The notes under the pieces are model-generated. The model searched no databases. It saw nothing but the letters and a program-made list of their open reading frames with translations, and was not told the origin of the DNA. 64,000 bases of DNA from Macrostomum lignano (lineage: Eukaryota). The stretch lies in the NCBI GenBank assembly GCA_002269645.1, contig NIVC01001024.1:62001-126000 (forward strand), read 5' to 3'. The translations under genes and the position numbers were made by a program. This document shows, piece by piece, positions 18,470 through 63,882 of this stretch. How positions within the stretch are numbered: the first letter of the stretch is position 1; every line of letters begins with the position of its first letter.

Positions 18470-20228
18470 ATGCCACCTGCTCCTTGTTCAGCAATCATGC
18501 CACCTGCTCCTTGTTCAATGCGCCTCTGTCGCAGCCCCGCCATTGGCGAGTCACCTGTAACCTGCCAGCCTCTCTGCCACCTGCACATGCAGCAAGACTT
18601 CATCGAAGTAGACGAGGCTCAAGCCAGAGTAGCCCACAAAGTGCAGCTCTTTAAGAAGTACCAGGAGCCTATGAGACTGATGCAGCAGAGACTCACATCC
18701 GACCTGCAGCTGCTCGATGACACCTTTACCGACCTGAGAGAGACATTGGACAGGTGTCAAAGTGAGCTCGTTGCTGTCGTTACCAAACAGCATGACCAGC
18801 TCATGGACCACCTGTCAAGTGTCTCAGACATGAATGACTTTGAAAAAGAGCTAAAGAAAGCCAAAGATGACAAAAATACGAGGCAGGCCTTCCTCATAAA
18901 CAGGAGCATGGAGGGATCGCTGAAGACATTGCAGCTGGACTCGAATCTGGTGAGATTGGATGAGGAAAGTCAGACAGTCGAAATCGCAGCTTACCCGGAT
19001 TTGAACTCGAGAATAAGAGGGCTTGAGACCGGACTGAGAGCTGAGTTGGTTTTACTCGGAAAACTCGTTGAGCAGTTTGGTGCTGCTGCCGAGTCCATTC
19101 AGACTGATGATGAAATTGTACTTCGAGCAGAAGAGAGCAAAAGCGAGGCAGAGATTCTAGCGAGATCGGTATGTCTCACAGTGTGCAGCAACACCACTGG
19201 TTTTGTCGTTGGCGAGTTAGGTGTAATTGAGAAGGCTACTGAGGATTGCAATGACTGTCTGCCACAACCGAGTATCTTTGTAGCTGTCCTTCCTGAAGCT
19301 GATCAAGGGCAGCAACTCTGCTCAGAGACAATAGATAAAAGCCGTTCAAGCCCGAAAGACATGGCCTTTAAAATTTTGCTGCTCTCCGATGATGCAAACG
19401 AAGTTGGACGCCTGACGTGCAGCTGGGAGGCCGATCAGCCGATCCGAGATCTCCACTGCGACAATGAGCGACAGCTGCTGTTCATCGCTCAGGAGACATC
19501 GGTGACAGTGGCCGACCTCAGCGGAGCTCTCAAGTCAAGAATCTGCGTCACCGAGTTGCACGAAGGCGCTACGGAGCTGTGGTGCATTGCTGGAAACTGC
19601 GACAAGCTGTTTGCTCTAATTGAAAAGCCAGATCGACATCTGGCCATTGTGGGAGTCGAGAAAGACTCTGGTAAGGTTCAACTGGCTTTTCCCATACCCA
19701 GTGGTTGTGAGCTCATGAGAGATGGTTCGAAAATGTCAGTCAGAGACCAGATGCTGTTCTTGTCGGATAGGTGGAATGTTTCCACTATCTGCATCATTAC
19801 TACGAGCTAAGAAACTGATCAACTCAAGGTCGTTCTGTATGGGACCATGCCAGACGCAGGGCTTGTGCAGAGACACAGAAGATGAGGCCTATGCCGTGGC
19901 TTGGGAGAACTCTTCTGCAGCAGAATTTCAACTTGTTCCGTGCGCACCTTCACTCACACTGTGGCCGACATCCGAGACTCCGCAGTACATCCTGTCCTCT
20001 GATGCAGGTGTTCAGTACAAAGTGGCAAAGGTGGAGAATTATCGAGTCATTGTTACAACCTGGCGAATCGAATATGTGAACAGAGATGACATTGAATACG
20101 ATGATGAATATGAAGACGAAGATCAAGATCAAGATGAAGACGAAGATCAAGATCAAGAAGAAGACATCATCAACATTCGCATCATCAACAAACAACAGCT
20201 AAGCAAAATTCATTCGCATCACAGTTAA
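18470..20228 (+). pseudogene. Paralog 1 of the Cys/His + coiled-coil + beta-rich family; frameshift at ~19805; acidic tail
   Basis: ORFs 18470-19810 and 19722-20228 align to intact paralog 2; net +7 nt at attact-acgagctaagaaa-ctgatc. Confidence 0.85.
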
Positions 20229-20235
20229 ACTGCAG

Positions 20236-22983
20236 TTAAACAGCATTTAATCGCATCAGCTTCTTCCTCTCTTCAGCTCTCTTTATTCCTGTTGTACGCC
20301 CCCGCTTTCTCTGCTGAGCGAGCGTCCTCTGACTGTTGCACCATTGATGCAGGCGAAGTCTGGCAAACAACTTGGCCATTGCCTTAGCACAGCGTTCGCC
20401 GTGATCCGAGCTGTGCGTCTGAATATTAGCAAGAACAATGGGAAAGAACTTTTCCTGAAGCCGTTTGCTCACGTCCTTCAGAACGAACAGCTCTTTGTCC
20501 GTTGTCATGAAGGTGCGCTCCATCTGACAGACTGCAGATATGACTGCCTTGTTGGGAATGATCAGTTTTCCAGTCCCGCCCTGTCCGTTCTTGAGCTGCA
20601 GGAAGCGCATCTCTCCCCAGCCATCGCCTTTTAACGACTGCAGGCACTCCTCGCACTTTTCCTCAGATTTGAATAGCTTGAAAAGCAGCCAGCCTCCAAT
20701 GTAGGCGCACTTCTCATTCTCAAGGCTGCCGACTGTGCCAGCAGGCAGGTCTTGAGCTTCCTCAGTGAAGTCTGCTGAAATCAGACCATCGCCCTGCGGA
20801 CCAGGACTGGGCGCACTTGCACTTGCTGTTACTTTGGCCTGAAACTCGGTCAGCAAGGTGCTGCCATCGTTCTCGCAGTTGCTGTTGGTCTGCGATAGAC
20901 AGCCCAACAAGTGGTTGACAGATAAAGACCTCAGTGCCGCCACGGCTTCTCGGCACTCCGGTCTGTCATTGAAGCCGCCTCTACGCCGGATGCAATAAAA
21001 TCCGTTTTCGACGTGATCCTGTGTTAGCTGTCTCACCATCACCTTCTCAGTACTGTCGACTTAAAGGGCTTGCTCTGCGATTTGCTGAATCGACCTCAAA
21101 CTGTATTGCCAGCCAGTATTGAACTTCATTCCGTTCACTTTGACCCCATCCTTGTGAAAATCCAAAGCCTGCAACCAGTTACACCAATAATCGATTTCGG
21201 AATTCTTCGCGTCCCTGTTGTCAATTGTAATTCCATCTCGAGCCATTTGACGAATCGAAGAGAGCATCAACAAGCTCGCAGAACCTGGCGGTATGCAGAG
21301 CAGTGTCACTGACAATTACACCGTACTCAACGTAGACACGCAAAGCCTGTGCCATGGTTCGTGACAAGACCTGAGCAGCTAGCTTGACGCTCATATTCTT
21401 GCCAATTGTAAGATTGACGTGAACTTCCTTTAACTTGGGCCCCAGTCGGAATTGATCAGGCTTACTAAATTCAGTTTCTGCGACAGCTAAGATGTCGGCC
21501 CAGCAAGCGATCTGCCGCTGTCCATTGTCATCAAAATGAATGAAATGAATAATTTCATGAGCGCGTTTCGCATGTTCTTCAAACAGTGAGGAACATCCAC
21601 TACAGCTGAAATTCGAACGACACTGACGTCGATTTCGATGCTCATCTTAGGACTGTCGGCATTTGCGCCCAGATCACGAATGCACTTCCACTGTGTCGCT
21701 TCTTGGTCGCAGACAATCGCGTACACTTTCAGGCCCATTCTTGTGACAGCGGCGACAGCTTCAGTGAGAATTTGCTTGAATCTCAGAGCTCCTGGTGCAT
21801 GGTGCAAGAGTTAGAATCCGACTGGCTGCTTCCAGTTCGAGCAGAATCCTCTGACCCAGACGACAACCAGCTCGTCTGCAACCGTCGAGGTCCTACCACC
21901 CGCACTAGGGCCACAATCCTCAAATCCGATAATTTGGTCTGCATTTGGATCAAATCTTACCGACGGTGTGATTGCCATGCCATCAAGGCTGATGGTGCAC
22001 ATTTTCTCAGCTTCCGTCATTGAAACTGCAGCTGCTGCAACACTGCCCTCAATTATTGGACAGATGCCAGAATTGCGCACACAAGATCCAATTTTCTGTC
22101 GAAGTGTCGATCTACATGGCAAGAGAAAACCGATGTGCGCATAAATCAATGTGATCTCGGACTGTAATGCAACAGACCAATTGCCAGGCGTTGGGTTGCA
22201 CGCGACCAAGTCGGACGGCGCTTTTTCGAATTCTGCAACTGATCCTTGATGAATTCCTTCACCACTGGGGTCATCTGACTCAGTTGTGAGCAGTGGCATT
22301 TCACTCGATCATTGCGGAGCTTTGCATTTTCTGCAAGCAGCGTTTTATATTTAGCTTGAACAAGCGCCAGTTTTCGGTTCAAATTGCTGAATTTTCGGTT
22401 CTGCTGCCTCAATCTCGCCGATAAGTATGCAGCTGATGACGGCTTGCGGCCTCTTGCCGGAAGACTTTCGCTTTCAGTTTTGGCAACACCGACATCACTC
22501 TCGACCCCATGCACGACTGGGTGCGATCCCGAGTCAGTCGTTTCTCGACACTTCGGAGGTGGCCACTGCCGAGGCTCTGGAATTTCCTTGTAAAATTGAA
22601 GGCTTGGGTACGCACGGTCAGACAGCCTGGTGGATGTATCATGTCGGAGTCTTGGACATGAGTACATTTCATCCGTAAAATGGTGGCTGCACACAACGGC
22701 ACACTTTCATTTGCCTTCGTTTATTTTTCCAAGAAGATCGGCTCGAAAAATGCGTCTGGCCCAGTCTTCGCATCTGAAATTTGAATTTGCGCCAGAATTG
22801 AAGATTAGCCATGTTTTTAATTGTGTGAATTGCGATGCCGGTTGTACGAGGGTATTTCAAAAGTTCGTAGACTTGGTTGTAGGTCGTAGTCAAATGGCTC
22901 TTGACTGCTCCTTGGAGAATGCAGTAAATGCAGTGGGGGGGTTCAGAGTTTGATCGCAGATTTCTCGCGGTCATTTCAGTCAA
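20236..22983 (-). pseudogene. THAP-domain P-element-family transposase, decayed
   Basis: RCEDWARR..ADL...VCSHHF..AYPSL (THAP); CTISLDGM..D.IIGFED..WKQPVGF; IVCDQ; DVPHCLKNMRN; LTQDHVENGF.CIRRRGGFND.P; several stops and frameshifts; no TIRs found. Confidence 0.88.
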
Positions 22984-23774: not shown

Positions 23775-25391
23775 ATGGAGACAGAAAGCTGTTCAGTGCG
23801 CCTCTGCCGCAGTCCCGCTGTTGGCGAGTCACCTGTAACCTGCCAGCCTCTCTGCGACCTGCACATGCAGCAAGACTTCATCGAAGTAGACGAAGCTGAA
23901 GCCAGAGTAGCCCACAAAGTGCAGCTCTTCAAGAAGTACCAGGAGCCCATGAGACTGATGCAGCAGAGACTCACATCCGACCTGCAGCTGCTCGATGACA
24001 CCTTTACCGACCTGAGAGAGACATTGGACAGGTGTCAAAGTGAGCTCGTTGCCGTCGTTACCAAACAGCATGACCAACTGATGGACCATCTGTCAAGTGT
24101 CTCAGAGCTGGAAGACTTCGAGAAGGAGCTAAAGAGAGCCAAAGATGACAAAAACACGAGGCAGGCCTTCCTCATCAACAGGAGCATGGAGGGATGGCTG
24201 AAGACATTGCAGCTGGACTCGAATCTGGTGAGATTGGATGAGGAAAGTCAGACAGTCGAAATCGCAGCTTACCCGGATTTGAACTCGAGAATAAGAGAGC
24301 TTGAGACCGCTATGAGCGCCGAGTTGGTTTTACTCAGAAAACTCGTTGAACAGTTTGATGCTGCTACCGTTTCTAGGCAGATTGATGACGAAGTTGTACT
24401 TCAAGCAGAAGAGAGCAAAATCGAGGCAAGGAGGCTGAAGACGACTGCAGCATGTCTCACAGTGTGCAGCAACACCACAGGTTTTTTTGTAGACGAGTCA
24501 GGTGTGATTGAGAAGACTACTGAGGATTGCAGCGACTGTCTGCCACAGCCGAGTATCTTCGTAGCAGTTCAACCTGAAGCTGATCAAGAGCAGCAACTCT
24601 GCTTCGAGAGATTACATAAAAGCAGTTCAAGCCCGAAAGACATGGCCTTTAAAATTTTGCTGCTATCCGATGAGGCCAAAGAAGTTGGACGTCTGTCGTG
24701 CAGCTGGGAGGCCGATCAGCCGATCCGAGATCTCCACTGCGACAATGAGCGACAGCTGCTGTTCATCGCTCAGGAGGCATCGGTGACAGTGACCGACCTC
24801 AGCGGAGCTCTCAAGTCAAGAATCGGCATTACAGAGTTGCGCGAAGGCACCAAGGAGCTGTGTTGCATTGCTGGAAACTGCGACAAGCTGTTTACTCTAG
24901 TTGAAGAGCGAGACAGTAGTCTGGCCATTGTGGGAGTCGAGAAAGACTCTGGAAAGGTTCAACTGGCTTGTCCCATACCCAGAGATTGTGAGCTCGTTAA
25001 AGAAAATACGAAAATGTCAGTCAGAGATCAGATGTTGTTCTTGTCTGATAGGCGCGATGTTTTCACTGTCTGCATCATTACTAATAAGCTGATCAACTCG
25101 AGGTCGCTCCGTCGGAGGCCCTGGCAGATGCCAGGTTTGTGCAGAGACACAAAAGACCAGGTCTATGCTGTGGCTGGGGAGAACTCTTCTCCAGCTGAAT
25201 TTCAGCTGGCTATCTGCGCACCTTCACTGACACGAAAGCCGATATCAAAGACACCGCAGTACATCCTGTCCTCTGATGCAGGCGCTCAGTGCAAAGTGGC
25301 AAAGGTGGAGAATGGTCGAGTCATTGTGAAAACCTGCCGTATTGACTGTGTGAACAGTAATGAAGATGAAGACGAAGACGAAGAAGGGTGA
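23775..25391 (+). CDS. Paralog 2, intact, 538 aa, intronless; B-box-like C-x4-C-x11-C-x3-C-x2-H motif, coiled coil, predicted beta-propeller-like C-terminal half
   Basis: ATG 23775 in GCCATGG context; CSVRLCRSPAVGESPVTCQPLCDLH; heptad-rich LQLLDDTFTDLRETLDRCQSEL; WEADQPIRDLHCD block. The domain names are inference. Confidence 0.8.
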   Translation: METESCSVRLCRSPAVGESPVTCQPLCDLHMQQDFIEVDEAEARVAHKVQLFKKYQEPMRLMQQRLTSDLQLLDDTFTDLRETLDRCQSELVAVVTKQHDQLMDHLSSVSELEDFEKELKRAKDDKNTRQAFLINRSMEGWLKTLQLDSNLVRLDEESQTVEIAAYPDLNSRIRELETAMSAELVLLRKLVEQFDAATVSRQIDDEVVLQAEESKIEARRLKTTAACLTVCSNTTGFFVDESGVIEKTTEDCSDCLPQPSIFVAVQPEADQEQQLCFERLHKSSSSPKDMAFKILLLSDEAKEVGRLSCSWEADQPIRDLHCDNERQLLFIAQEASVTVTDLSGALKSRIGITELREGTKELCCIAGNCDKLFTLVEERDSSLAIVGVEKDSGKVQLACPIPRDCELVKENTKMSVRDQMLFLSDRRDVFTVCIITNKLINSRSLRRRPWQMPGLCRDTKDQVYAVAGENSSPAEFQLAICAPSLTRKPISKTPQYILSSDAGAQCKVAKVENGRVIVKTCRIDCVNSNEDEDEDEEG

Positions 25392-26335: not shown

Positions 26336-28731
26336 ATGGAGACAGAAAGCTGTTCAGTGCGCCTCTGCCGCAGTCCCGCTGTTGGCGAGTCACCTGTAAC
26401 CTGCCAGCCTCTCTGCCACCTGCACATGCAGCAAGACTTCATCGAAGTAGATGAGGCTGAAGCCAGAGTAGCCCACAAAGTGCAGCTCTTCAAGAAGTAC
26501 CAGGAGCCCATGAGACTGATGCAGCAGAGACTCACATCCGACCTGCAGCTGCTCGATGACACCTTTACCGACCTGAGAGAGACATTGGACAGGTGCCAAA
26601 GTGAGCTCGTTGCTGTCGTTACCAAACAGCATGACCAACTCATGGACCATCTGTCAAGTGTCTCAGAGCTGGACGACTTCGTCAAGGAGCTAAAGAGGGC
26701 CAAGGATGACAACAACCCGAGGCAGGCTTCCTCATCAACAGGAGCATGGAGGGATCGCTGAAGACATTGCAGCTGGACTCGAATCTGGTGAGATTGGATG
26801 AGGAAAGTCAGACAGTCGAAATCGCAGCTTACCCGGATTTGAACTCGAGAATAAGAGAGCTTGAGACCGGACTGAGAGCTGAGTTGGTTTTACTTAGAAA
26901 ACTCGCCGAGCAGTTTGATGCTGCTGCCGATTCTAGGCGTTTTGATGAAGAAATTGTACTTCAAGCAGAAGAGAGCATAAGCGAGACGGAAGTGTTGACG
27001 ACTGCAGTATGTCTCACAGTGTGCAGCAACACCACAGGTTTTGTCGTTGACGAGTCAGGTGTGATTGAGGCTTGTGAGGATTGCAGTGACTGTCTGCCAC
27101 AGCCGAGTATCTTTGTAGCTGTCGAAACTGAAGCTGATCAAGACCAGCAACTCCCCCCAGAGTCAATACATGCAAGCAGTTCAAACCCGAATGACATGGC
27201 GTTTAAAATTTTGCTGTTCTCCGATGATGCAATAGAAGTTGGACGCCTGACGTGCAGCTGGGAGGCCGATCAGCCGATCCGAGATCTACACTGCGACAAT
27301 GAGCGACAGCTGCTGTTCATCGCTCAGGAGACAGCGGTGACAGTGACCGACCTCAGCGGAGCTCTCAAGTCAAGAATCTGCATTACCGAGTTGTTCGACA
27401 GATCTAAGGAGCTGTGGTGCATTGATGGGAACTGCGACAAGCTGTTTGCTCTAACAGAAGAACAAGACGGCAGTCTGGCCATTGTGGGAGTCGAGAAAGA
27501 CTCTGGAAAGGTTCAAGTGGCTTTTCCCATACCCAGTGGTTGTGAGCTCTTTAAAGAAGTTACGAAAATGTCAGTCAGAGATCAGATGTTGTTCTTGTCT
27601 AATAGGCGCAATGTTTTCACTGTCTGCATCATTACTAAAAAGCTGATCAACTCGAGGTCACTCCGTCAGAGTCCCTTGCAGATGGCAGGTTTTTGCAGAG
27701 ACACAGAAGACCTTGTATATGCTGTTGCTGGGGAGAACTCTTCTACAGCTGAATTTCAACTGGCTCCCTGCGCATCTTCGCTGAAACTGCAGCCGATATC
27801 AGAGACACCGCAGTACATCCTGTCCTCTGATGCAGGCGCTCAGTGCAAAGTAGCACAGTTAGAGAATGGTCAAGTCATTGTGACGACCTGGCGAATCGAA
27901 TACGTGAACAAAATTGAAGATGAAGATGGGGACAATGGCAGGGGTGTCGGTACACAGAGCATCAGACTATCAGAACCAGGAGCGACGCCGCACCGTCAAC
28001 CGAGCCCCCTGGCTTCTCAGTTCCACGATCGTCAGACGCAGCCGCTCCCGCTGCCGCAGCCGCAGCAGATGCAGCAGATGCAGCATCAGCAGCAGCAGCC
28101 GCATCAGATGCATCAGATGCAGCATCAGCAGCAGCAGCCGCATCAGATGCATCAGATGCAGCATCAGCAGCAGCAGCCGCATCAGATGCATCAGATGCAG
28201 CATCAGCAGCAGCAGCCGCATCAGCAATATCAGCCATATCAGCAAAACCAGCTGCATCAGCAATATCAGCTACATCAGCAATATCAGCTGCATCAGCAAT
28301 ATCAGCCATATCAGCAAAACCAGCTGCATCAGCAATATCAGCTGCCTCAGCAATATCAGCTGCATCAGCAATATCAGCTGCATCAGCAATATCAGCTACA
28401 TCAGCAATATCAGCTGCATCAGCAATATCAGCTGCATCAGCAAAATCAGCTGCCTCAGCAATATCAGCTGCCTCAGCAAAATCAGCTGCCTCAGCAAAAT
28501 CAGCTGCCTCAGCAAAATCAGCTGCCTCAGCAAAATCAGCTGCCTCAGCAAAATCAGCTGCCTCAGCAAAATCAGCTGCCTCAGCAAAATCAGCTGCCTC
28601 AGCAAAATCAGCTGCCTCAGCAAAATCAGCTGCCTCAGCAAAATCAGCTGCCTCAGCAAAATCAGCTGCCTCAGCAAAATCAGCTGCCTCAGCAAAATCA
28701 GCTGCCTCAGCAAAATCAGCAGCATCAATAG
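26336..28731 (+). pseudogene. Paralog 3; 1-bp deletion at ~26727; long Q-rich tail
   Basis: aggcaggcttcctc versus aggcaggccttcctc in paralogs 1 and 2; may be a long-read indel error. Confidence 0.8.
28060..28728 (+). repeat. Coding tandem repeats: 36-bp (HQMHQMQHQQQQP-type) then 18-bp (QQYQLH grading to QQNQLP)
   Basis: Direct reading, in frame with paralog 3. Confidence 0.95.
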
Positions 28732-28765
28732 AAGCACTGGTGACAGTTAACTGGGTAAATATTTT

Positions 28766-29887
28766 TCTATATGTAATACCTTTGTCACACATATCAATCT
28801 GTAATACCTTTGTCACCCATATCAATCTGTAATACCTTTGTCACCCATATCAATCTGTAATACCTTTGTCACCCATATCAATCTGTAATACCTTTGTCAC
28901 CCATATCAATCTGTAATACCTTTGTCACCCATATCAATCTGTAATACCTTTGTCACCCATATCAATCTGTAATACCTTTGTCACCCATATCAATCTGTAA
29001 TACCTTTGTCACCCATATCTATATGTAATACCTTTGTCACCCATATCAATCTGTAATACCTTTGTCACCCATATCAATCTGTAATACCTTTGTCACCCAT
29101 ATCAATCTGTAATACCTTTGTCACCCATATCTATATGTAATACCTTTGTCACCCATATCAATCTGTAATACCTTTGTCACCCATATCTATATGTAATACC
29201 TTTGTCACCCATATCAATCTGTAATACCTTTGTCACCCATATCAATCTGTAATACCTTTGTCACCCATATCAATCTGTAATACCTTTGTCACCCATATCT
29301 ATATGTAATACCTTTGTCACCCATATCAATCTGTAATACCTTTGTCACCCATATCAATCTGTAATACCTTTGTCACCCATATCAATCTGTAATACCTTTG
29401 TCACCCATATCTATATGTAATACCTTTGTCACCCATATCAATCTGTAATACCTTTGTCACCCATATCAATCTGTAATACCTTTGTCACCCATATCAATAT
29501 GTAATAGCTTTGTCACCCATATCAATCTGTAATACCTTTGTCACCCATATCAATCTGTAATACCTTTGTCACCCATATCAATCTGTAATAACTTTGTCAC
29601 CCATATCTATATGTAATACCTTTGTCACCCATATCTATATGTAATACCTTTGTCACCCATATCAATATATAATAGCTTTGTCAGCCATATCAATCTGTAA
29701 TACCTTTGTCACCCATATCAATCTGTAATACCTTTGTCACCCATATCAATCTGTAATACCTTTGTCACCCATATCAATCTGTAATACCTTTGTCACCCAT
29801 ATCTATATGTAATACCTTTTTCATCCATATCAATATGTAATAGCTTTGCCACCCATATTAATATGTAATACCTTTGTCACCCATATC
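28766..29887. repeat. 28-bp satellite tgtaatacctttgtcacccatatcaatc, about 40 units
   Basis: Direct reading. Confidence 0.97.
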
Positions 29888-30177
29888 GATTTGCAGTAGC
29901 CCTAACAGTATGCCATTTTGCTGTGTCCTAATTAAAAACACAAAATGAGAAAAAAATACAGCCTTCCATAATCCTTTATTTAAAGCGTGGTCAAACCGCA
30001 AAACTTCGTCAGACTAAATTATTTTCGAACTATGAATAAGCTGTGAATTTATTTTCATGACAAACGACATATCTCCTCCTGTAAAAGCACAATACCCTAC
30101 AGTACAGGACAATTTCAGACAGCAGAAATACTAGAAAAATGCAGTTTATTAAAAACTTCACTAGACGACACGAGAGG

Positions 30178-33100
30178 TCACTGAGTCTCATCAGCGACAG
30201 CATGGGCCGGATCTGCCCACAAGAACACGGCATCGCCCATCGCGGTGAGAACTCTGCACAGTTTCGGATGAGCCGACACAGACTGCACCACCGAAGCCTG
30301 AGTCCTGACTCCAGCCCTGGCGGGCTCAGCTGCGGGATGCCTCAGCCTGCACCGCAGCTCGCCGCTGAGCAGATCCCAGCAGATCAGCTCGCCAGAGCCG
30401 CCAGCCGAGCCGGACAGAACCAGCGAGTCTCCCGCGGACACGTCGCATTCAACTGACAGATCGGCCACGCTGTGACCCGAGTAGCTGGCCAGCAGGTCGC
30501 CAGTGTCCCGGTCGATGAGGCGGAGTCTGGCATCGGAGCAGCTGGCCAGAATGCACCGGCCATCGCGGGTGGCGCACAGCCCGATGAGAGGCTTGGACAG
30601 ATTGTCCTCTGCGAGGCGGCCTGCGGGGTTCGTTTATGGCTCAGCTGTTGCCTTGATCTGAGACACTGCTCGAATACAACTGCCCTGCAAAGTACATGTA
30701 AACTATGGTAGAACTGATAAGGAAAGAGACACTGCGCGTAGCAAAAGAGAAAAGTTGTTCGCAAATCGCAAATCAAAGTCATGAGTCTCATTTCGAAATA
30801 CTCAAGCTTGATTTGAGCTCAGGCCCAGCTCCCTTAAGCAATGACTGCCTTCGGCGCATCGTCCACAGGCAGCGCTGAGGGCCATTCTTCCCAATCGGCT
30901 CACGATCCTGACTGACGCAGAAATGAACAGCGGTCCTGACTTTCGAATCGTCAGGCATGTTCACTCTCTGTGCCTTGGGGGCTTGCCATTGGAAAATTGT
31001 GGCACCAGAGTCAGACGCATTCAGCTCGTACAGGTCTAGCTCTACATGTAGCTCTAGCTCTCTAGCTGTAGCTGTAGCTCTAGCTCTACATGTAGCTCTA
31101 GCTCTCTAGCTGTAGCTGTAGCTCTAGCTCTACATGTAGCTCTAGCTCTCTAGCTGTAGCTGTAGCTCTAGCTCTACATGTAGCTCTAGCTCTCTAGCTG
31201 TAGCTGTAGCTCTAGCTCTACATGTAGCTCTAGCTCTCTAGCTGTAGCTCTAGCTGTAGCTCTAGCTCTACATGTAGCTCTAGCTCTCTAGCTGTAGCTG
31301 TAGCTCTAGCTCTACATGTAGCTCTAGCTCTCTAGCTGTAGCTGTAGCTCTAGCTCTACATGTAGCTCTAGCTCTCTAGCTGTAGCTCTAGCTGTAGCTC
31401 TAGCTCTACATGTAGCTCTAGCTCTCTAGCTGTAGCTGTAGCTGTAGCTCTAGCTCTACATGTAGCTCTAGCTCTCTAGCTGTAGCTGTAGCTGTAGCTC
31501 TAGCTCTAGCTCTAGCTCTACATGTAGCTCTAGCTCTCTAGCTGTAGCTGTAGCTCTAGCTCTAGCTCTAGCTCTACATGTAGCTCTAGCTCTCTAGCTG
31601 TAGCTGTAGCTGTAGCTCTAGCTCTCTAGCTCTAGCTCTAGCTCTAGCTCTAGCTCTACATGTAGCTCTAGCTCTCTAGCTGTAGCTGTAGCTGTAGCTC
31701 TAGCTCTCTAGCTCTAGCTCTAGCTCTAGCTCTAGCTCTAGCTCTACATGTACACGAAATGACACATACTTTTTTAACAAAACGCTCAGGTTGGAAGTAC
31801 AACGTTTGCTTGCCGATTTTTGCTTTCAGGAATTTTGCTTGCCGAACTTTGCTTGCCGAACTTTGCTTGCAGGAAATTTGCTTGCAGGAATTTTGCTTGC
31901 CAAAGTTTGCTTGCAGGAATTTCGCTTGCCGAACTTTGCTTGTGGAATTTCGATGTCTGCTTCCTAGAAATCCTTCCTTCCTTCCTTCCTAGCAAGCCAA
32001 TTTCATAGAACCGGTTAGGTTGCTATCATTGACATCTTAATCGGGCTCACAACGTTGTCATTGCAAGGCAATTTTCAAGCATGAATGCTAAAAAAAGCTT
32101 TCAAACCAAAGCCCCTCAGCAACGGCACCTTTCCTGGCATCGTAGCAGCGCAAGCGTCCATCCAGACTAGCCGTATAGATTCGCCAGGAGTGAACAGCCA
32201 CCGCCGTGACGGAGTCCCTGGCATCGGTGAGCAGCTGCACAGGCGCTTGAGCTTTACTGCGCAGATCCCACAGGCGGACTGTGCAGTCCACTGAACCGCT
32301 GGCCAGCAGGGTGGCGTCCGGACTGAAGGCCAATGCGCCAACTCGAGCCAGGTGGCTGCGGTATCTGCGCAGGCAAATAGACAGGTTGGGAGGACTCGAT
32401 GCAGCATTTATTGGGATAAAAGAGGCATTTAAACGGCATGAAGGACTCAGCGTATAACTACTGCAGTACATGGACTGGAGAAAATCGTAGGACGTAGACA
32501 CAACAGTGCGTATGGACTCTTATGCATATGTCTAAATACATATGTAGACTTAAAGAAGTCTTATACCGGTAGATGGCTGGAGATTCTCAGATGACTGGGG
32601 ACTCTCATAGATGGACTGGGGACTCTCATAGATGGACTGGGGACTCTCATAGATGGGCTGGGGACTCTCATAGATGACTGGAGACTCTCATAGATGGACT
32701 GGGGACTCTCATAGATGACTGGAGACTCTCATAGATGGACTGGGGACTCTCATAGATGACTGGAGACTCTCATAGATGGACTGGGGACTCTCATAGATGG
32801 ACTGGGGACTCTTATAGATGGACTGGGGACTTAGAGATGACTGAGATTCTCATATGACTGGAGAGTCTTATAGATGCCTGGAGATTCTCTAAGATAGACT
32901 GGCCTTTCTAGAACAAACAGAAGACACTTAAAAAGCAAAGCCTCTAAGCCCTCACTTTCGCACGGCGGTACCGCTAGCCGTGTCCCAATAAGCCACCATT
33001 TTATCCTCGCCCCCGCTAGCCAGATTGGCATTGTCGCAGGCGCAGGCCACAGCCAGCACCTCCTGACCGTGGCCAAGATACGACCTGAGCAGCAAGGATT

Positions 33101-33233
33101 TGGCTGGATTCCACAGCTTCAAAGACTTGTCCGCGCCGCCAGTAAGGCAGTAATTGCCGTCGGCGTTAAATCTGACGCAACGAACGGCGCCCTGGCCGCA
33201 CACTGTGCGGCATTGCAGCTGCTCCGGTGTTGT
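30178..33233 (-). CDS. WDR83: WD40 protein WDR83/MORG1; exons 33233-32956, 32364-32129, 30620-30178; start codon not in these exons
   Basis: CGQGAVRCVRFNADGNYCLTGGADKSLKLWNP...GHGQEV, DARDSVTAV, SVVQSVSAHP..VLTAMG match WDR83; GT-AG junctions with consistent phases 2 and 1. Confidence 0.92.
30924..30980 (-). repeat. 57-bp dispersed repeat, inverted copy at 59069-59125
   Basis: ccccaaggcacaga.agt..acatgcctgacgatt.ga.agtcagg.ccgctgt.ca, 7 mismatches by eye. Confidence 0.75.
31035..31752. repeat. Compound (TAGCTC/TAGCTG) microsatellite with a 44-bp higher-order unit
   Basis: ctacatg recurs at a 44-bp spacing early in the array, then unit length drifts. Confidence 0.95.
31805..31945. repeat. 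15-bp minisatellite tttgcttgccgaac / tttgcttgcaggaa
   Basis: Direct reading. Confidence 0.85.
32590..32880. repeat. 21/22-bp minisatellite gactggggactctcatagatg
   Basis: Direct reading, about 13 units. Confidence 0.95.
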
Positions 33234-33269
33234 CTGAAAGTTTTTATTTAAAATTTTTTGTGTAGTACC

Positions 33270-35117: not shown

Positions 35118-37918
<2,801 letters not shown>

Positions 37919-46292: not shown

Positions 46293-49200
46293 AGTCCCCG
46301 CCGCGGACTTTAGTCACTCAGCAGGCCACTGCTGAGACCGCCACCGCCGCACCTGTACAGCCATTAGCACCCAAGCGACCTTGGAGAGACCCGTTTCTAA
46401 CTGGTAAGATTCAGGGCCGCTATTTTGCTTTCTTGCTTGATACCGGGTCCAAGTGCGAAGTCCTAGGATTCAGCACCTGGCACCACCTATGTACTGACGA
46501 CCCGACCCTGCGTGGCCAAATTGAGCCCTGCCTTTAACATATCGTGACCTACAATGGAGAGCCTATTCAAATGGCAGGCCAGCTATCTATTAAAGTGAAA
46601 ATTGGTAATTTCGAGCCTACAGTCAAGTTTCTGCTAGCGAAAGGATCGCATGACAACATTCTGGGTTTCGAGTTCCTGGAGAAGTACAGCACATCACTGG
46701 ACCTCGCCGCCAGAATGCTGTTTTTCAAGGACGGCACTGCCGCACCGCTTTGCTATACGCGAACTGAAGCTACAACGTGCAGAATTTACACCGCCGAGAG
46801 CACTACGGTGCCACCATTATCATCTGCCCGAATCAAAATCAAATTAGCAAAAGGACGAGAAGAAAACCAGGGTACACCCGCAGTGATTGAGCCGCTGAAA
46901 CCGGCTCGGCGTGAAGAAGATGTGCAGCACCTGGATGCCGCGCCTGCCTTGATTTCCATGGCTAATGGAGAAGGCGCTATCGAAATGATCAACCATGGCA
47001 CTACAGCCATCAAAGTGCGAGCGAATGCCCTAGTCGGGATTGCTAGACCAATCAGACTGCCCGAGCTACATTTCTTCCCGCTGCTGAAATCAGAAGACTC
47101 TGTCAATCAAATCCAAGACGAGGATCCCGATGCCTGGATTAAGGAGATCGATATCAGTGAGGATCTGTCCAAAGACCAGCGCGCTCAAGTCATCGAGCTA
47201 TTGAGAAAGTACAAGACCATCTTCTCGCAGGGGCCACACGATCTCGGCCGAACTCATCTGGTCACCCACAACATCGTACCTACAAATTGTGCAAGATTTC
47301 AGGAGTCTGAATCAAAAGTGTGAGTACTTTCCGTACCCGATTCCTAATATCCAAGAAGCGTTCGCTAGCCTTGAAGGAAGCCAGCTATTCAGCACGTTTG
47401 ACTTGAACAGCGGCTACTATCAGATTCCACTGCGTCCAGAGGATCAAGATCTGACTGCCTTCGCCATGCTGCACCGCGGACAATTCGCCTACAATGTTAT
47501 GCCTTTGGGACTAAGTTCAGCTCCAGCCAGCTTCATGCGACTGATGAACACTGTGCTCAACGGGATCGCCTACAAAAGTGCAATAGCCTATCTGGATGAT
47601 GTCATCGTCTATTCTAAGAAATTCAACAATCACCTACAACATATGGAAGAAGTTTTCAAATGGGTTCAAGAAGCAAATCTAAAGTTCAAAGGCAAGAAGT
47701 GCCATCTATTTCGGGCCAGTATAAACTATCTGGGACATGTGGTAACAAAAGATGGAATCAAGACTGACCCAGCTAAGATCGAAGCGATTCAAACCTGGCC
47801 AAGACCAAGGACAGCTCGCCAACTTAAAAGTTTTGTCTGCACGTGCGCTTATTATGCCAAATTCGTCCCTAGCTATGCAGAACTTGCTGCTCCACTCCAC
47901 GATCTGATTAAGGAGAAGAGGATTAGAAACTTCAATTGTCTATGGGGAAAAGCCCAGCAAGATGCGTTTGATCAGCTCAAGGCCGCAATGACTTCGACGA
48001 CAGTGCTCGCGTATCCGCAGTTCAGTGAAGATCCAGATGTAATGTTTATCCTGGACACGGATGCTTCTGCGACCAGAATCGGAGCCTGCCTGAGCCAACG
48101 CCAAGCTGATGGAGTTGAGCGACCAATTGGCTATTTCTCCCGGCGACTGAAACCAGCCGAAGCCCGATATCCGATTACTAAACAGGAACTCTTTGAATGC
48201 GACACTTCAGATTCTACCTGCTGGCCAAGAAGTTTATCTGCCGAACTGATCATGCCGCATTAACCTGGATCTTAAGGCGAACTCAGCAAGAAGGAATCTT
48301 TGGACAATGGCTACAGAGACTAAGCGAATTTGAGTTCGAGATCCAGCATTGCAAATCGAGTCAGCATCAAAACGCCGACGGTCTCTCGAGACGGCCGGAA
48401 GACGACGCCGAATGCTTGGAGGAGGCTCAGCGCAAGGCAGCTGATGAGGACCAAAGTAAGCAGCCAGCCGCGATAACTGGCGCAGCGGCGCTGAAGGTCC
48501 ACGACAGCAGCCACCCTAGTCCTCCACCGAGCAAGAAGCCGTCGACCCGCCGTAAGCGACGGAAACCGCCGACTAAGCCGAAGGAGTCCAACGGCGAGGC
48601 TACGCCGCCAGCAACCCCGACAGCCAACAGCAAGCCGCTGACAGAGCTGCACCCGCCGGCGACGAAGCCGAGGCCATTGGCCAGCCATTACGATGACTCG
48701 CAGAGGTCGCCTACCAGTTTTAGTAGCACGACATGTTGCCCGTCAAGGAGCCGCCGACTACTAGCTGGAGACGGCACAGACAGCGACCACAGCGCAGCCA
48801 GAGAGGACAGCTGCCAACCCGCTCGCTGCCCAAAGTTTGAGAAGAAGGTGAGATTCAGCAGCGACGCGGACAGCTCTGCTGACTCATCATCAACTGCTGA
48901 CCGATCTGAATCTGACAACAGTGACACCAAAGCTACCAACGAGGATCGACCTTCGGGCACATCAATGACCCGGCAACCGGCCAGAGTAGCGATCGTGCGG
49001 AGGGAGCTCCAGACCCCAAACCATGCCGCCATAGCCGAAGCTGCGCCGACTAATTTGACTAATCGACGTTCAACATTGAATCTAACTGATCACATCCCGA
49101 GGCCAGTCACTCGTGAGGAGCTCCAGACTCATCAGCGTGCTGACTCTGCCATCGCCATGATGATCAACCTTTTGGAAAGCTGACAGCCAAAACAGCCACT

Positions 49201-50418
49201 AAATTAGCGATTGAATATGACGCGAGACGAACGAAACTTACTAGCGTTCTACGAGCAGCTCGAAGTCCGAGACGATGGACTATTAGTTATTCATCTCGAC
49301 AATATTGGCGAAGAGGAGAAAGCGCGGATCGTTCTGCCGAAGAGCCTCGACCCCACTGTGTTTGCCGACCTGCACGGTTCGCCCTACTGCGGACACATGG
49401 GCCGAGACCTCACAATCGCGAAGGTGCGCGAAAGGTTCTGGCGACCTGCCCTGGCCAAGGCAGTGTCCGACTATGTTGCTTCCTGCCAGACCTGCACTCA
49501 AAGCAAAGGACGGCGACGAATTCCGGCGCATGTACAGTCGTTTCCGGTCTGCGAAATCTATGGGCGATGTGCAATCGATATCCTGGGCCCCACTGGAGAC
49601 CCGACAGACCGAGGAAACAAGTACATCCTAACCTACGTCGATACTACGTCAAAGTATCCATTCGCCTTCGCCATGAAAAATCAGCGCGCCAAGACAATTA
49701 TAACTCTGCTGCAGGAACAAGTCTTCCCGATCACCGGAATTCCCACGTGGATCCATTCAGACCAGGCAAGCAGTTCACTGGGCACGAGTTTAGACATTTC
49801 TGCGAAGTCTATGGCATCCGGCAGACAACGACGCCGCCATATTCGCCCTGGGCCAATGGACAAGCTGAATCGTGCAACAAAAACATCAAGAAGGTGCTCA
49901 CTTGTCTTCTCGAAGATCATCAACAGTGGGACAAGATGCTGCCAGCCGCTTTGACAGCCCTGCCATCAGCTGTCAATTGTACGACGGGATTCTCGCCGCA
50001 TTACGTCGTCTACGGAGTGCCTTATCAGTACCCGATCGATAACACCCTAGACCGCCTGGACATATCTCCGGACCTCCCCAAGTACATCGCGAAGCATCAG
50101 CGCAGACTGGTCAAGACCGAGAGAATTGTGCGACAGCGATTGCGAGCCGAGATCCAACGCCGCGAAGAATACTACGAGAACCGACCCAAGCCCGTGGAAC
50201 TGCAGCCCGGAGATCTGGTCTGCCTGGCCAACCTGAAGCTCGAGTTGGGTGAGCTGCCCAAGTTCCACCGGCCGTACAAGAGTATGTACAAGGTCAACAG
50301 AAAGGTTGGTGAAGTAGCTTATTGGATCCAGCCAGCAACTGCCCAACAAGGACACCCCGCCGAAATGTTGGTACATCGCAACAACATAATTAAGGTGCCG
50401 CAGATGATGGCGGATTGA
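46236..50418 (+). pseudogene. gypsy pol (protease, RT, RNaseH, long linker, integrase), several stops and frameshifts
   Basis: FLLDTGS; DFRSLN, FDLNSGYYQ, MPLGLSSAP, YLDD; LDTDAS, TDHAAL; HGSPYCGH..C..C, IHSDQG, NGQAESCNK. Confidence 0.93.
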
Positions 50419-59339: not shown

Positions 59340-61374
59340 TCATGAAAAATCCAAATTCCTTTTTAGCAAAGTTGCTTTTATTTTTGCTAAAAACCAGTAC
59401 GAATTCATATCTCGTTTGCATGTAGAATTTTCAGTGTTTAGTAATTTCTGACCGAACCTAAGCAGCAGCTCGACAAGTTCGCTTCTTCCCTTCTCCCTGG
59501 CCGAGTCCAGAGCAGTCCGGCCCCATCCATCTCGCAAACTCCAGTCTGACCCTGCGTCCAGGAGAACCCGACAAACTGCAGCGGCGTTAGCAGCAGGAGC
59601 CTCTCTAGCCGCGATCATGAGTGGCGTAGATCCGAAGCGATCTCTGGCGTTAGGGGAGGCTCCAGCAGCCAGCAGGGCAGATGCGGCGGCAGAATTGCCG
59701 CCCTGGGCCGCATAGTGCAGACAACTGCGAGACCACATGTTCGAGCAAGTTGGATCAGACAGCCGCAGCAACTGCTGCCACAATTCTTCATCGCAGCATT
59801 TGCTGTTGAAAGCTGCCCACATGAACGCAGTTGCACCGGATTTCTCTGGTAGGTCGCAGTTGCCGCGGGTCGCCGCTTTCTGCAGGCCCAACGAGTTGCC
59901 AGCATCGGCCAAGCGTTTTAAAGCTTTTCGATTTGACTTTTCCTAAATTGAGATGGCATTTAGAGAAGCAAGAAATACTGCTCATTTTCAGCGAGACTGA
60001 GCTAGGCTAATTGACAGAAACAGGGCTATTTAATATTTCCCTCACCTGAAATGTTAGGCCGGAGATGAAGCCAGCTTTCAGTACGAGTCGTATCTCACTG
60101 CAATCAAAAACATTAATTGAGTCAATAAAAGCTGATTCTCTTTATACATTAATATATTAATACAACCGTCTACATTTGAGAACGCTCATTACATCTGGTG
60201 GTCTCATTCATGTAAATGTTAGAAGTTACTTGTGAATAGTGACAAACGAATTAAGTTATTAAGCTATGAACGCTATACGTGATTACGTTTTTTGGCTGAT
60301 TTGTGAATCTAGCGACATGTTACAAACTTAGGATGTCTATGGCTTAGGATGACCTTTTTAGGATGTCAATGGCTTAGGATGAATTTTTTAGGGTGCCTGT
60401 GGCTTAGAATGACTTTTTTTAGAATGTCTATTGCTTAGCATGACTTTTTTAGGATGTCTATGGCTTAAAATGACTTTTTAGGATGCCTATTGCTTAGGAT
60501 GTCTATGGCTTAGGATGTCTATGGATTATAATGAATTTTTAGGATGTCTATGGCTTAGGATGACTCAGGATGTCTATGGCTTAGGTTGACTTAGAATATA
60601 TATATAGCTTAAGTTAACTTAGGATTTCTATGGCTTAGGATGACTCCCCGATCCAACGCGTAGTTGGATTAAATTTCCAACGCTATCTGATCGACCTCCA
60701 TCCACGGACTACTTAAGTAGACGACAATTAAGTAGTCCGTGCCTCCATCAGGACCATGGATAGCTCTGACAGGTGCTCAATGAAACACCCCTAGATGGTA
60801 TCGAAAATCTTTCTCACCGATTAATGTCTCTAGCCAGCTCTGAGTGGCCGTTAAATCTTGCCAGGTCCATAGCCGTCTGACCGCGTCGATCCTTCATTTC
60901 GAGCAGTTGCAATCTTTTCGAGTTGCCAAATTTTTCGAACTCATTAAAAATTGGTTGCCACAGAAGGTGCAGCAGGTGCTTGGCGCATCTCCAGCTGCCA
61001 GTCCGCGCCGCCTCCATCAGCGGAGTGGCGCCGGAGTGGTTCGGCAGCCACTTCGCATTGAACGGCAGCAGCGTCAGCAGCCGCAGGTGGTCCCTCCTTG
61101 AAGCCAGGTGAGCAGCCGTGTCGCCCGCATCGTCAGAAGCAAGAGGATCTGCACCCAGCTCAAATAAGTACATGATGCACTTTTCAGTCATTACGGGCGT
61201 ATCAGGAGCATCGGCCACCAGCATGAGGACGGTCTGGTGAGCAGCATCAGTTGCCGTCGCCAGCTGATGCGTAGCCAAACGCCGTACCTCGCCGAAGTTG
61301 GCATGGCAGATCAGGTGAGCAAGTGTCTGCATTGCAGTTCTGTCATTGGCAATGCTCGGATTACTGGTAGCCAT
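59340..61374 (-). CDS. Ankyrin-repeat protein, about 403 aa; exons 61374-60818, 60097-60046, 59942-59340
   Basis: GDTAAHLA, GATPLMEAA, RSCLHYAA, GSTPLMIAA, GRTALDSA; a 52-nt middle exon (ttgcag|...CAG|gtgagg) reconciles phases 2 and 0. Confidence 0.8.
60328..60645. repeat. Degenerate ~29-bp tandem repeat taggatgtctatggcttaggatgactttt
   Basis: Direct reading; in ankyrin intron 1. Confidence 0.9.
60703..60741. mobile_element. 39-bp inverted-repeat insertion with 8-bp TSD
   Basis: CCTCCATC [CACGGACTACTTAA gtagacgacaa TTAAGTAGTCCGTG] CCTCCATC. Confidence 0.75.
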
Positions 61375-62313
61375 GTGTGTTTGTTAGAGAGATACAGAGC
61401 ACAGCTTGGACTGAGAGAGGCTCTATGTGAGAACAGAGCTAGACCTATTGTACCTGGAGCTGGCTCCGAGACAGATCACTTATATTCGCGTACTCTGAAC
61501 TACACTACTGTACGGCAATGAAGGGATGAATTTTCCAACTGCAGTACAATAAAACTGAGCTCAGAACAGAGTGCTGCCCAACTATGTTTGTACTTAGAAG
61601 TACATCTCAACCGCAACTCTATCCTGTGCTCATGAATGCTCTCCAAGTAGCCCCTATGAATGTACAGCCTCTTTCACAGTTTAGTGGAAGACGCTGCATC
61701 TGAAGAAATCTTGAGCTGAGCACGTTCTGAGGCGAGAGTTAACAGTCTATACCAACAAGAACACCCCAAAGAATCCGTAGACAGCAAACGCAGTTTTCTA
61801 AGAAGCGAGATTTTATTTAAAATCTGTTTAAAACGAGGCTCAAAAGTAAACCAATTAAACTGAAAATAATTTTTTCTAAAAGAAGGAGTATCCAGTTTAA
61901 ACAAATAACTCTAGTTATAAATTTAGATCATACGCTTCGTAAAATAGAAAGTTATAATAGGGAATAATCAAGATGTCTTCAGATGAGGCGTCTTCCATTT
62001 AAAGTACACAAAATACGAGTACATGCCATAGAAATTGATTATAAAAATTTATTCTTATCTATAACGGATCTATCAGTTTCGAAGAGCGTTAAATGAGAGA
62101 TAAAAACAGCATCTACGTGGGGAGTTGTTAAATTGTCTTTAATGTGCAGCAGGGAGCAGGATAAATATTGAATTTGATCAGCCAGAAGCATTGGTAGAAA
62201 AAAATGGAATTTAAGCAGTTCTGAAGTTTGCTTAAAATTTTGTTTATTCGATTTTTCGAGGATTTATCGAAATAAAGTAGTAAACTTTTCACTGCTTGTA
62301 CAGGTAAAAAACT

Positions 62314-63882
62314 TCACTTCACTCGAAGAGTGTAGCATTGCGGACCACGGGCGCCACCCGAACTAAAGAACACTTTCCGATGCTTGCTACTCTCTGCCAG
62401 CACAAGCCGCAAGTTCTTCATTGAGGTCTCCCAGTCAGCAGCTTGGAGATGTTGGACAAGCGGAGCCTCGCCAAAAATTGGAATCCGCAATCCCCACGTG
62501 AATTCGCCAAACGATGCCAAAGAAAGTATTGCGGAATCGTTTTCCCTCAAATTAGACGTGTCACAGCCATATGCACAGTGCCGGTCTTCGGACTGCTCCT
62601 CGATGAGCATCTCCGTAATGATGCACACCTTGTAAAGTTTGGAGTCATGATAGACCATCAGCATAAAGTCGTGAACATTAATTAGCGATGACTGGGTCAA
62701 ATTATCCAGGAAATCAAGCTGCAGCTGACTTTGCTCTTCTCCAGAGTCCTTGGAAATGGCGAACACCGATGCGGATTCTACCGCCACAAACAGCTTGTCC
62801 GAGTTCCCAGTTAAACAGCAAATTTTAGGGTAGTTCACTGTCCAAAGCGCGACTCCGCATAGGTCTGTAGCAGTTACTGAATTTCTCTGAGCTACAAATA
62901 GCAGTTGTCGACGACTATCCCATTGAATATCGACGATTGAAGAATCGCTAATGAGTGATAGTGAGGATTGGCCAAAAAGCTCGTTATCGGCTGAGATCAA
63001 TACTGCGTCAAACCATGCGCGATATTCGCTTTCATCTAAAGCTTCAGATAGAAAAGTTATGTCAACTCTAGTGGTATTAATATCAACGAAAATGACCGTC
63101 GGTTCAGGCAGCTCACGGACCCCATCGATTGCCTGACCTCTGACAATTCTGCCAGACTTATCAAGTGCATAGCCTATGGTATTGTCGCACACCACCACTT
63201 TAACTGCATTGCTGCCAGCATCAAAACAGCTGTCGATTGTCAGCTCTGGTAGCGGCAGATTGTCGCTTGACTCAGTTGAGTTCGCTGCGCTAGAAACGTC
63301 AAGGTTATCCAGAATCTGCAGCGTGATTTCTTGTTGAATTTCGATGGCATTTGCAATGCTTTTTATCTGAGCGTTCACGTCCGGGTAGGCAACCATCCGT
63401 ACTTGTTCCGCTGATTCGTCCCAGTGAATCAACTTTGAGTCCAGCTCGATAGTTTCCAAGCATCTTTCGATATCGTTGCTGATTAGAAAGGCTTGCCTCA
63501 TGTCTTTCGATTCCTTGGCCTTGGAAAGGTCATTTTTTAATTCTTCCATCTCGGAGAAAGCCGTCATAGAATTTAAAATGTTCTCATGATGCTTAGTAAT
63601 CTTATCGGTAAGCTCCTTTTGACACTTGTCGAGTGCCTCGCGGAGGTCTTCAAAATTATCTTGAAGAAGTTCCAAGTCAAAAGAGAGCCTCTGCTGCAAC
63701 TTTTGCACTGCTGGCTTAAATCGATTTAATTCTTCGATTTTTTGCCTTACGGAAGCTTCATATTTTTCATACCGTTGAACATCCACCTTAAGGTGCTGAC
63801 TGCATAGAGGCTGGCATGTGCTGGGGGACGGACCCTCCGCTGGTTGCTGGCACATCCGAACGGAACAGTTTGTAGCTTCCAT
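62314..63882 (-). CDS. Paralog 5, intact, 522 aa, most divergent
   Basis: CSVRMCQQPAEGPSPSTCQPLCSQH, LQQRLSFDLELLQDNFEDLREALDKCQ, WDSRRQLLFVAQ, GNSDKLFV. Confidence 0.85.
   Translation of the reverse strand: MEATNCSVRMCQQPAEGPSPSTCQPLCSQHLKVDVQRYEKYEASVRQKIEELNRFKPAVQKLQQRLSFDLELLQDNFEDLREALDKCQKELTDKITKHHENILNSMTAFSEMEELKNDLSKAKESKDMRQAFLISNDIERCLETIELDSKLIHWDESAEQVRMVAYPDVNAQIKSIANAIEIQQEITLQILDNLDVSSAANSTESSDNLPLPELTIDSCFDAGSNAVKVVVCDNTIGYALDKSGRIVRGQAIDGVRELPEPTVIFVDINTTRVDITFLSEALDESEYRAWFDAVLISADNELFGQSSLSLISDSSIVDIQWDSRRQLLFVAQRNSVTATDLCGVALWTVNYPKICCLTGNSDKLFVAVESASVFAISKDSGEEQSQLQLDFLDNLTQSSLINVHDFMLMVYHDSKLYKVCIITEMLIEEQSEDRHCAYGCDTSNLRENDSAILSLASFGEFTWGLRIPIFGEAPLVQHLQAADWETSMKNLRLVLAESSKHRKVFFSSGGARGPQCYTLRVK

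Follow-up and report, generated by a model that had tools for sequence, protein, structure and literature searches.

The stretch of 64,000 nucleotides analyzed here (positions 62,001 to 126,000 of the forward strand of contig NIVC01001024.1, Macrostomum lignano assembly GCA_002269645.1; hereafter the window) harbors five loci, P1 to P5, of an unnamed gene family whose products combine an N-terminal zinc motif, a long coiled coil and a predicted C-terminal β-propeller, and which probably descends from the TRIM-NHL proteins. Five paralogs had been proposed in a first-pass annotation made from the letters alone, and two independent scans bear this out: tblastn of the window with P2 and P5 recovered P1 to P5 and nothing further, while a family hidden Markov model (HMM) run against all six-frame open reading frames (ORFs) of the window returned the same five and no others. 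P1 to P3 lie on the plus strand. The main ORF of P1 (18470-19810, 446 amino acids) encodes the zinc motif, the coiled coil and about five propeller repeats, and the last propeller repeats together with an acidic tail from a GAT/GAA repeat follow in a displaced frame at 19812-20228. P2 (23775-25391) is an intact, intronless gene for 538 amino acids, laid out as a CCCH knuckle at residues 6-30, a helix at 28-124, a propeller at about 225-522 and then an acidic tail. P3 is divided into an N-terminal part with the zinc motif and the first half of the coiled coil (26336-26761) and a remainder in a shifted frame (26746-28731), in which the propeller-coding region is open to about 27933. On the minus strand, the pseudogene P4 (56668-58149) consists of an ORF of 342 amino acids at 58149-57121, a middle piece in another frame with the GDRDKLF block (57151-56957) and a last piece with the VRDQFLF block (56955-56668). 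P5 (62314-63882, also minus) encodes 522 amino acids, is intact and intronless, and represents the most diverged copy.

At the protein level, P2 shares 83% identity with P1, 80-91% with P3, 38% with P4 (E 2e-85) and 33% with P5 (E 4e-72) in tblastn, and among all five copies identities of 30-83% go with E-values from 1e-31 to 0. Those of P4 and P5 against P2 (1e-72 to 1e-85) exclude a chance resemblance. As had been noted from the sequence, all five copies begin with C-x4-C-x11-C-x3-C-x2-H and share the blocks WEADQPIRDLHCDNERQLLFIAQ, GNxDKLF and VRDxxLF. P2 and P5 are unbroken single-exon ORFs that align end to end with their relatives and are thus taken to be coding regions without introns. 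Within the P1-P3 array, P2 is the sole copy recorded as a called gene (GCA_002269645.1, NIVC01001024.1). P1, P2 and a P1-like gene on contig NIVC01001101 end in acidic tails made of GAT/GAA-type repeats, the length of which differs between copies. At the other end of P1, a perfect tandem duplication of 27 bp (18461-18517) has doubled the start codon along with the leading cysteine of the zinc motif, giving MPPAPCSAIMPPAPCS.

Three of the five copies had been described as frameshifted, and sequence comparison allowed the lesions in P1, P3 and P4 to be located. In P1, a 7-bp insertion (CTACGAG, 19800-19806) shifts the frame; neither P2 nor P3 has it, nor does the P1-like copy on NIVC01001101, which is 89% identical and carries a 1-bp frameshift of its own. 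Since seven base pairs of complex sequence are not a homopolymer-type error, the lesion is very probably real and P1 a pseudogene. In P3, one C of a CC pair is deleted at about 26726/26727. The shifted frame then stays open for approximately 400 codons across the whole propeller, passes the position of the P2 stop codon and continues into Q-rich microsatellites (28056-28727). P3 is either freshly broken or the result of an assembly error; that it is truly intact is a possibility we regard as doubtful. Its Q-rich extension comprises two microsatellite blocks, one with a 39-bp unit (4.3 copies) and one with an 18-bp unit (29 copies), directly followed by some 40 copies of a 28-bp satellite with 95% identity (28056-28727 and 28772-29887). 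In P4, the frame changes near 57150, outside a homopolymer, and reverts within T7/T6 runs at about 57054-57040; the first of several in-frame stops lies at 57123-57121. A second copy of this region, in the order P5, ankyrin, ankyrin, P4, is carried by contig NIVC01003310, where P4 has both frameshifts of the window copy plus an extra 2-bp insertion at a nucleotide divergence of 1.6%. Because both frameshifts recur on an independently assembled contig, they are real and comparatively old, and P4 is a genuine pseudogene.

These contigs belong to Mlig_3_7 (NIVC00000000; PMC5730564), an assembly of the free-living flatworm Macrostomum lignano, which was generated from PacBio reads with Canu and polished by Pilon with Illumina DNA and RNA reads. 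The assembly contains about 180 Mb of duplicated blocks, as the DV1 line has extra chromosomes, and its annotation was derived from transcripts, with about five introns per gene on average.

To place the five loci in a wider context, an exhaustive HMMER search with the five-copy profile was carried out against 1.84 billion representative proteins. It retrieved 33 proteins, 25 of them with E≤1e-10. Beyond the window, the family forms about 30 clusters, nearly all of which are annotated as 'hypothetical protein BOX15_Mlig...' from M. lignano, and for each M. lignano gene model there are two to five nearly identical copies, located on different contigs. Automatic UniProt names are borne by a few members (one 'Tripartite motif-containing protein 2', two 'B box-type', others 'RING-type' or 'WD_REPEATS_REGION' domain-containing protein); the family is rightly called unnamed. 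Three clusters stem from environmental contigs of the Joint Genome Institute (JGI), with 28-37% identity to the best-matching M. lignano protein; one of these contigs, 1.9 kb long, holds an uninterrupted ORF, read as 534 codons, that starts with the family zinc motif. The family is thus present in at least one further organism. No ortholog in any other named animal was found among the 33 matches, the weakest of which is an unidentified protein of 1,033 amino acids with many NHL-like repeats that looks bacterial. Word-indexed homology searches, first with P2 and later with the family alignment, were too insensitive for this task and gave only the query itself and unrelated NHL proteins, and a literature search for NHL or TRIM proteins in Macrostomum yielded nothing on this family. 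Divergence among the members is deep (20-45% identity in an alignment of 22 sequences). In a neighbour-joining tree calculated without bootstrap, P1 to P5 form one clade with P0002 and P0003, referred to below as the window clade.

At other loci, the genes are organized in tandem arrays of same-strand single-exon genes spaced 1.2-2.8 kb apart, for example a triad that encodes 583 amino acids in 1752 bp, 534 in 1605 bp and 557 in 1674 bp, and these arrays are flanked by ordinary host genes such as those for a sulfatase and an MBOAT protein. Together with the census, they substantiate the view of the first-pass annotation that the family is lineage-restricted, expanded in tandem and intronless, and a single-copy conserved ortholog in other phyla, which would have spoken against this view, did not surface among matches that are nearly all from M. 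lignano. An intronless family in a genome with about five introns per gene suggests that the founder was a retrogene. The array in the window grew by local duplication: P1 to P3 go back to a recent triplication, the unit of which measures about 2.5 kb, and P4 and P5 are older.

The zinc motif has a family-wide core of four ligands, C-x4-C-x15-C-x2-H. In 17 sequences that are 15-45% identical to P2, the cysteines C6, C11 and C27 are invariant and H30 is conserved in at least 90%. The extra cysteine of C-x11-C occurs in the window clade only; hence, the longer motif described at first holds for all five copies, but its fifth ligand is specific to this clade. The motif is placed directly before the coiled coil, i.e. 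at the position of a TRIM B-box, and in the RING-bearing member P0031 it follows about 45 residues after the RING. Its spacing C-x15-C-x2-H appears to resemble the span from ligand 2 to ligand 5/6 of a B-box2. A B-box holds two zinc ions with eight ligands, and the motif could possibly be a vestigial half of one.

For the remainder of the protein, structure prediction was informative once relatives were included. With the five-copy alignment only, AlphaFold2 gave an unusable model (predicted local distance difference test, pLDDT, of 40), compared with a pLDDT of 78 and a predicted template modeling score (pTM) of 0.71 for P2 with the 22-sequence alignment. The latter model starts with a small β-knuckle (residues 1-27) that leads into a single helix at 28-124 (ten-residue blocks averaging pLDDT 89-97); throughout residues 11-140, each ten-residue block has a pLDDT of at least 89. 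Return helices follow at 128-144 and 169-203, and four-stranded repeats from about residue 225, mostly with pLDDT 84-95 over 225-445. A Foldseek search of the PDB matched β-propellers with E of about 1e-8, WDR5, G-beta and YncE first. The coiled coil and β-propeller suspected from the sequence are thereby supported, although Foldseek was unable to separate NHL from WD40 propellers. When the propeller profile was compared with itself, an internal period of about 45 residues emerged at 95% probability, and strand triplets in the sequences, together with the strand groups of the model, suggest that the propeller is apparently built of seven NHL-like repeats, not six. In the window clade this domain is acidic (net charge -13 and -9, pI about 5).

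The relationship to TRIM-NHL proteins emerges from the family as a whole. Used as a profile against PDB sequences, the alignment of 22 members matched the NHL domains of TRIM71 (6e-26), Drosophila Thin (1e-25), TRIM2 (1e-25) and TRIM3 (6e-22), and more weakly NHLRC2 (4e-13) and Brat (4e-12); it is the last two profile repeats that account for the match. Comparison by hhalign with P0049, a TRIM3-like sponge protein with RING, B-box, filamin and NHL domains, gave 95% probability (E 3e-8) and an alignment in register to both C-termini. In two members, P0014 and P0021, Pfam NHL exceeds its gathering score, and a single-repeat NHL HMM derived from sponge repeats detects one repeat in most members outside the window at 1e-4 to 1e-7. 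Furthermore, P0031 (Mlig004596) possesses a C3HC4 RING at residues 8-48 (zf-C3HC4_4 at 9e-6, which does not reach the gathering score), and behind it come the zinc motif of the family, the coiled coil and the propeller. Unlike those of the other members examined, the coding region of P0031 has no straight-through translation and is about 150 bp longer than the product needs, and it therefore probably contains an intron. This distant member is the only one with a RING; the proteins of the window have just 5-6 residues ahead of the zinc motif. On account of the TRIM-NHL profile matches and of P0031, descent from a RING-bearing TRIM-NHL ancestor is the best reading, and we consider it probable that the five loci represent a Macrostomum-centred, intronless and tandemly amplified family that descended from TRIM-NHL proteins and lost the RING. 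The term RING-less TRIM-NHL-like chosen in the first-pass annotation is a fair description insofar as the family profile matches NHL and P0031 retains a RING before the same zinc motif; the window clade taken alone gives no NHL signal.

A number of observations weigh against TRIM-NHL descent. A Pfam scan of the five window copies gave no significant family, RING, B-box and NHL included, and only weak hits of coiled-coil type; P2 had no match in the PDB by phmmer; the single-repeat NHL HMM found nothing significant in the window clade; and hhalign of the window-clade alignment alone with a canonical TRIM-NHL protein returned nothing. The NHL link of the window clade is transitive, via more conservative paralogs. 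The last two repeats of P2 (450-520) are modeled with a pLDDT of 33-68, yet this is the region with the best NHL matches in other members. The top 50 Foldseek hits, with TM scores of about 0.5-0.66, contain no NHL structure, and seven-bladed WD40/YncE propellers rank first. Nor was B-box homology of the zinc motif demonstrated: Pfam zf-B_box was not found in the window copies or the relatives scanned, an N-terminal profile searched against the PDB gave only coiled-coil noise of the apolipoprotein/keratin type, and hhalign of zinc motif plus coiled coil with 40 sponge segments of B-box2 plus coiled coil reached probabilities of 3-12%. As B-box homology is supported by none of these, the motif is here called a four-ligand zinc knuckle. 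Even the clustering of the four putative ligands C6, C11, C27 and H30 at a single site is a prediction from sequence and secondary structure. To these points can be added that the P5 gene of the window is not recorded as a called gene, and that the supplements of M. lignano papers, searched by gene ID, held no expression data for these Mlig genes.

Substitution patterns were used to assess whether the copies are maintained. Pairwise comparison of P1, P2 and P3 gave synonymous divergences (dS) of 0.15-0.25 and ratios of nonsynonymous to synonymous divergence (dN/dS) of 0.46-0.58 (coiled coil 0.24-0.27, propeller 0.56-0.71); apart from the two frame-breaking ones, all indels among these copies are multiples of three. 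For P5 and its copy on NIVC01003310, dN/dS is 0.33 (coiled coil 0.16, propeller 0.54), with one 15-bp in-frame indel. Every pairwise dN/dS computed lies below 1. In sliding windows, the corresponding ratio of proportions (pN/pS) stays between 0 and 0.25 in most of the zinc motif and the coiled coil, is about 0.8 in the linker and a clade-specific insert, and it reaches about 1.1-1.2 in two 40-codon propeller windows, whose small counts are no demonstration of positive selection. By these ratios, P2 and P5 are kept by purifying selection. In the first half of the coiled coil (P2 codons 41-100, 23895-24075), synonymous divergence among P1 to P3 drops to about 0.05, versus 0.2-0.3 elsewhere, which suggests gene conversion between the tandem copies or a constraint on the RNA. 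With the triplication of P1 to P3, the pseudogene P4 and the frameshifted P1-like copy on NIVC01001101, 'birth and death', the expression used in the first-pass annotation, is a fair description of the array.

Several other explanations can be envisaged. The loci might constitute an independent coiled-coil family with a generic seven-bladed propeller of the WD40/YncE type, whose likeness to NHL would be due to convergence or ancient repeat ancestry. The Foldseek ranking of WDR5, G-beta and YncE, the roughly seven countable repeats, the label 'WD_REPEATS_REGION' on two members in UniProt, the undetected B-box and the silence of the window clade in NHL searches are all in line with this. However, Pfam WD40 (PF00400) matched none of the five window copies or the 20 relatives scanned, while the true WD40 gene of the window was detected at 1e-16. 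Moreover, animal TRIM-NHL domains match best, by at least 12 orders of magnitude over other propellers, the alignment with a canonical TRIM-NHL protein remains in register to the C-terminus, the succession of zinc motif, coiled coil and propeller is TRIM-like, and P0031 carries a RING. We thus hold a WD40/YncE origin to be improbable and favor TRIM-NHL descent. An origin as transposable-element cargo, which could account for intronless genes in many copies within a window rich in Pao/BEL, non-LTR (non-long terminal repeat), gypsy-type and P-element-like elements, is very remote and was rejected in view of the array structure and the host-gene flanks: the copies form local head-to-tail arrays whose unit measures about 2.5 kb, the P-element-like remnant is inserted into the array but outside the repeat unit, a sulfatase and an MBOAT gene border arrays elsewhere, and 20-45% identity among copies is unlike an active element.

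The state of the local copies is open to two further interpretations. The entire cluster could be dead, with P2 and P5 simply having acquired no stop so far; three of five copies are disrupted, a dN/dS of 0.46-0.58 is rather high, and the missing gene record for P5 in the window and the lack of expression data in the supplements searched would be compatible with decay. Against this stand the values well below 1, down to 0.16-0.27 in the coiled coil, the indels that preserve the frame apart from the named lesions, including the one of 15 bp between the P5 copies, and the fact that P2 and both second-contig P5 copies are gene models in an annotation built from transcripts. Decay of the whole cluster is therefore quite unlikely. 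Slightly less likely still is the converse, namely that the frame lesions arose through faulty PacBio assembly of a genome that is partly duplicated, and that all five copies are intact. The single base lost from a CC pair in P3, with its long open frame beyond, and the position of the second P4 shift within T7/T6 runs would be in line with such errors. Yet Illumina DNA and RNA reads had been used to polish the assembly, P1 was hit by an insertion of 7 bp of complex sequence, and both P4 shifts, the first of them not in a homopolymer, are found on an independent contig that differs by 1.6%. Assembly error thus explains P3 at most, and a cluster of intact and broken TRIM-NHL descendants remains the preferred interpretation.

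Compared with known TRIM-NHL proteins (class VII TRIMs: TRIM2, TRIM3, TRIM32/Thin, TRIM71/LIN-41), the family has the same order of a zinc module, a long coiled coil and a C-terminal NHL-type propeller, and its profile matches their NHL domains best. In contrast, the window copies lack a RING, a recognizable B-box and a filamin domain. Pfam Filamin had no match in any member scanned, and the linker of the P2 model (145-225) consists of a hairpin and helices only. The zinc module has four ligands, the propeller of the window proteins individually escapes Pfam and apparently has seven repeats instead of six, and the genes are intronless and arranged in tandem. RING-less TRIM-NHL proteins are exemplified by Brat from Drosophila and NCL-1 from Caenorhabditis elegans, in which the top surface of the NHL domain binds RNA. 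Like the window family, they combine a coiled coil and NHL without a RING, so that both presumably act by binding and not through ligase activity. However, two canonical B-boxes are present in Brat, whose gene is conserved and does not form part of a lineage-specific expansion, and the acidic propeller of the window clade does not favor RNA binding. Lineage-specific TRIM expansions are known from fish and invertebrates. For example, the TRIM3-like protein P0049 is part of a very large tandem expansion in a sponge (named relatives from Halichondria panicea), with more than 15 distinct full-length RING/B-box/filamin/NHL paralogs on a single contig of 806,778 bp. These paralogs are likewise located side by side, but they have kept the full architecture and are easily recognized by Pfam, whereas the family in Macrostomum has been pared down and has diverged much further.

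Based on the sequence and the model, an intact protein of about 520-540 amino acids would consist of the zinc knuckle, a helix about 100 residues long plus a shorter return segment, and a diverged NHL-type propeller. It may dimerize through the coiled coil, antiparallel as in TRIMs, and thus display two propellers as binding modules. Most likely, then, these proteins are coiled-coil dimers with two propellers, predicted to be devoid of intrinsic E3 ligase activity, with dimerization, zinc binding and the ligand all putative. Without a RING, no ubiquitination is expected from the protein on its own; it could act by binding, scaffolding or sequestering, or as the partner of a RING-bearing paralog, a pairing that is conceivable. 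As ligand of the acidic clade, protein would be likelier than RNA, since an acidic propeller with an acidic repeat tail is a mild argument against RNA binding of the Brat/LIN-41 type. The innate-immune or anti-transposon role that had been suggested at first is a guess. In a more far-reaching and rather unlikely scenario, the genes would form a flatworm-specific, fast-turnover array of dimeric 'receptors' with a conserved zinc-knuckle/coiled-coil chassis and a remodeled, NHL-derived seven-bladed propeller with loops that diversify from paralog to paralog, directed at pathogen-, transposon- or mating-related targets and operating as a split TRIM together with Mlig004596. Bearing on this scenario, the propeller evolves at two to three times the pace of the coiled coil, pN/pS is about 1.1-1.2 in some 40-codon windows, and a relative with a RING exists.

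With these assignments, several dozen M. lignano 'hypothetical protein' genes gain a family and a structural model. They also illustrate how far a TRIM-NHL protein may be reduced under selection, i.e. to a form that lacks the RING, has a half-size zinc module and carries a propeller invisible to Pfam. As RNA interference and transgenesis exist in M. lignano, the role of such a RING-less TRIM descendant is directly testable. Lineage-specific TRIM expansions are common in animals, and the finding hence extends a known theme and does not open a new one.

Concerning the surroundings of the array, P1 and P2 are separated by a degenerate P-element/THAP9-like transposase (20236-22983, minus strand) in which Pfam recognizes TNP-like RNase H N and C domains; the remnant does not belong to the family and is a sign of turnover in the array. 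A copy of this remnant on NIVC01001101 (L003 16988-19898) is 98% identical, compared with 89-91% for the adjoining P1-like gene, which indicates that the window contig and NIVC01001101 are mosaic. On NIVC01001101.1, a fragment of a WD40 gene (L003 15383-16693) is found between the P1-like copy and the transposase, and in the window the corresponding sequence (30116-32427) comes after P3; this reflects either a structural difference between the duplicated regions or a misassembly. Upstream of P1 lie a 14-bp tandem array (27 copies, with a higher-order period of 128 bp) and a 21-bp array, at 16971-17356 and 17487-17690.

Two host genes separate the halves of the cluster, a WD40-repeat gene with several exons recognized by Pfam (30178-33203, minus) and a gene for a myotubularin-related phosphatase with a first exon of 461 amino acids (35556-37918, minus). 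Regarding the neighbors named in the first-pass annotation, no lectin could be confirmed: the single candidate, an ORF at 2840-3148 (minus), is C-type-lectin-like by eye and has no Pfam match even at E≤10. The ankyrin neighbor is real, with ORFs at 59340-59912 and 60814-61374 (both minus) that match Pfam Ank_2 at 6e-33 and 8e-11, respectively. The mobile elements of the window include a Pao/BEL-type ORF of 1227 amino acids (5129-8812, minus), a non-LTR element with endonuclease, reverse transcriptase and RNase H that is followed by a partial second copy (9603-16585, plus), and a gypsy-type element with reverse transcriptase, RNase H and integrase, the frame of which is split into several ORFs (45585-50418, plus).

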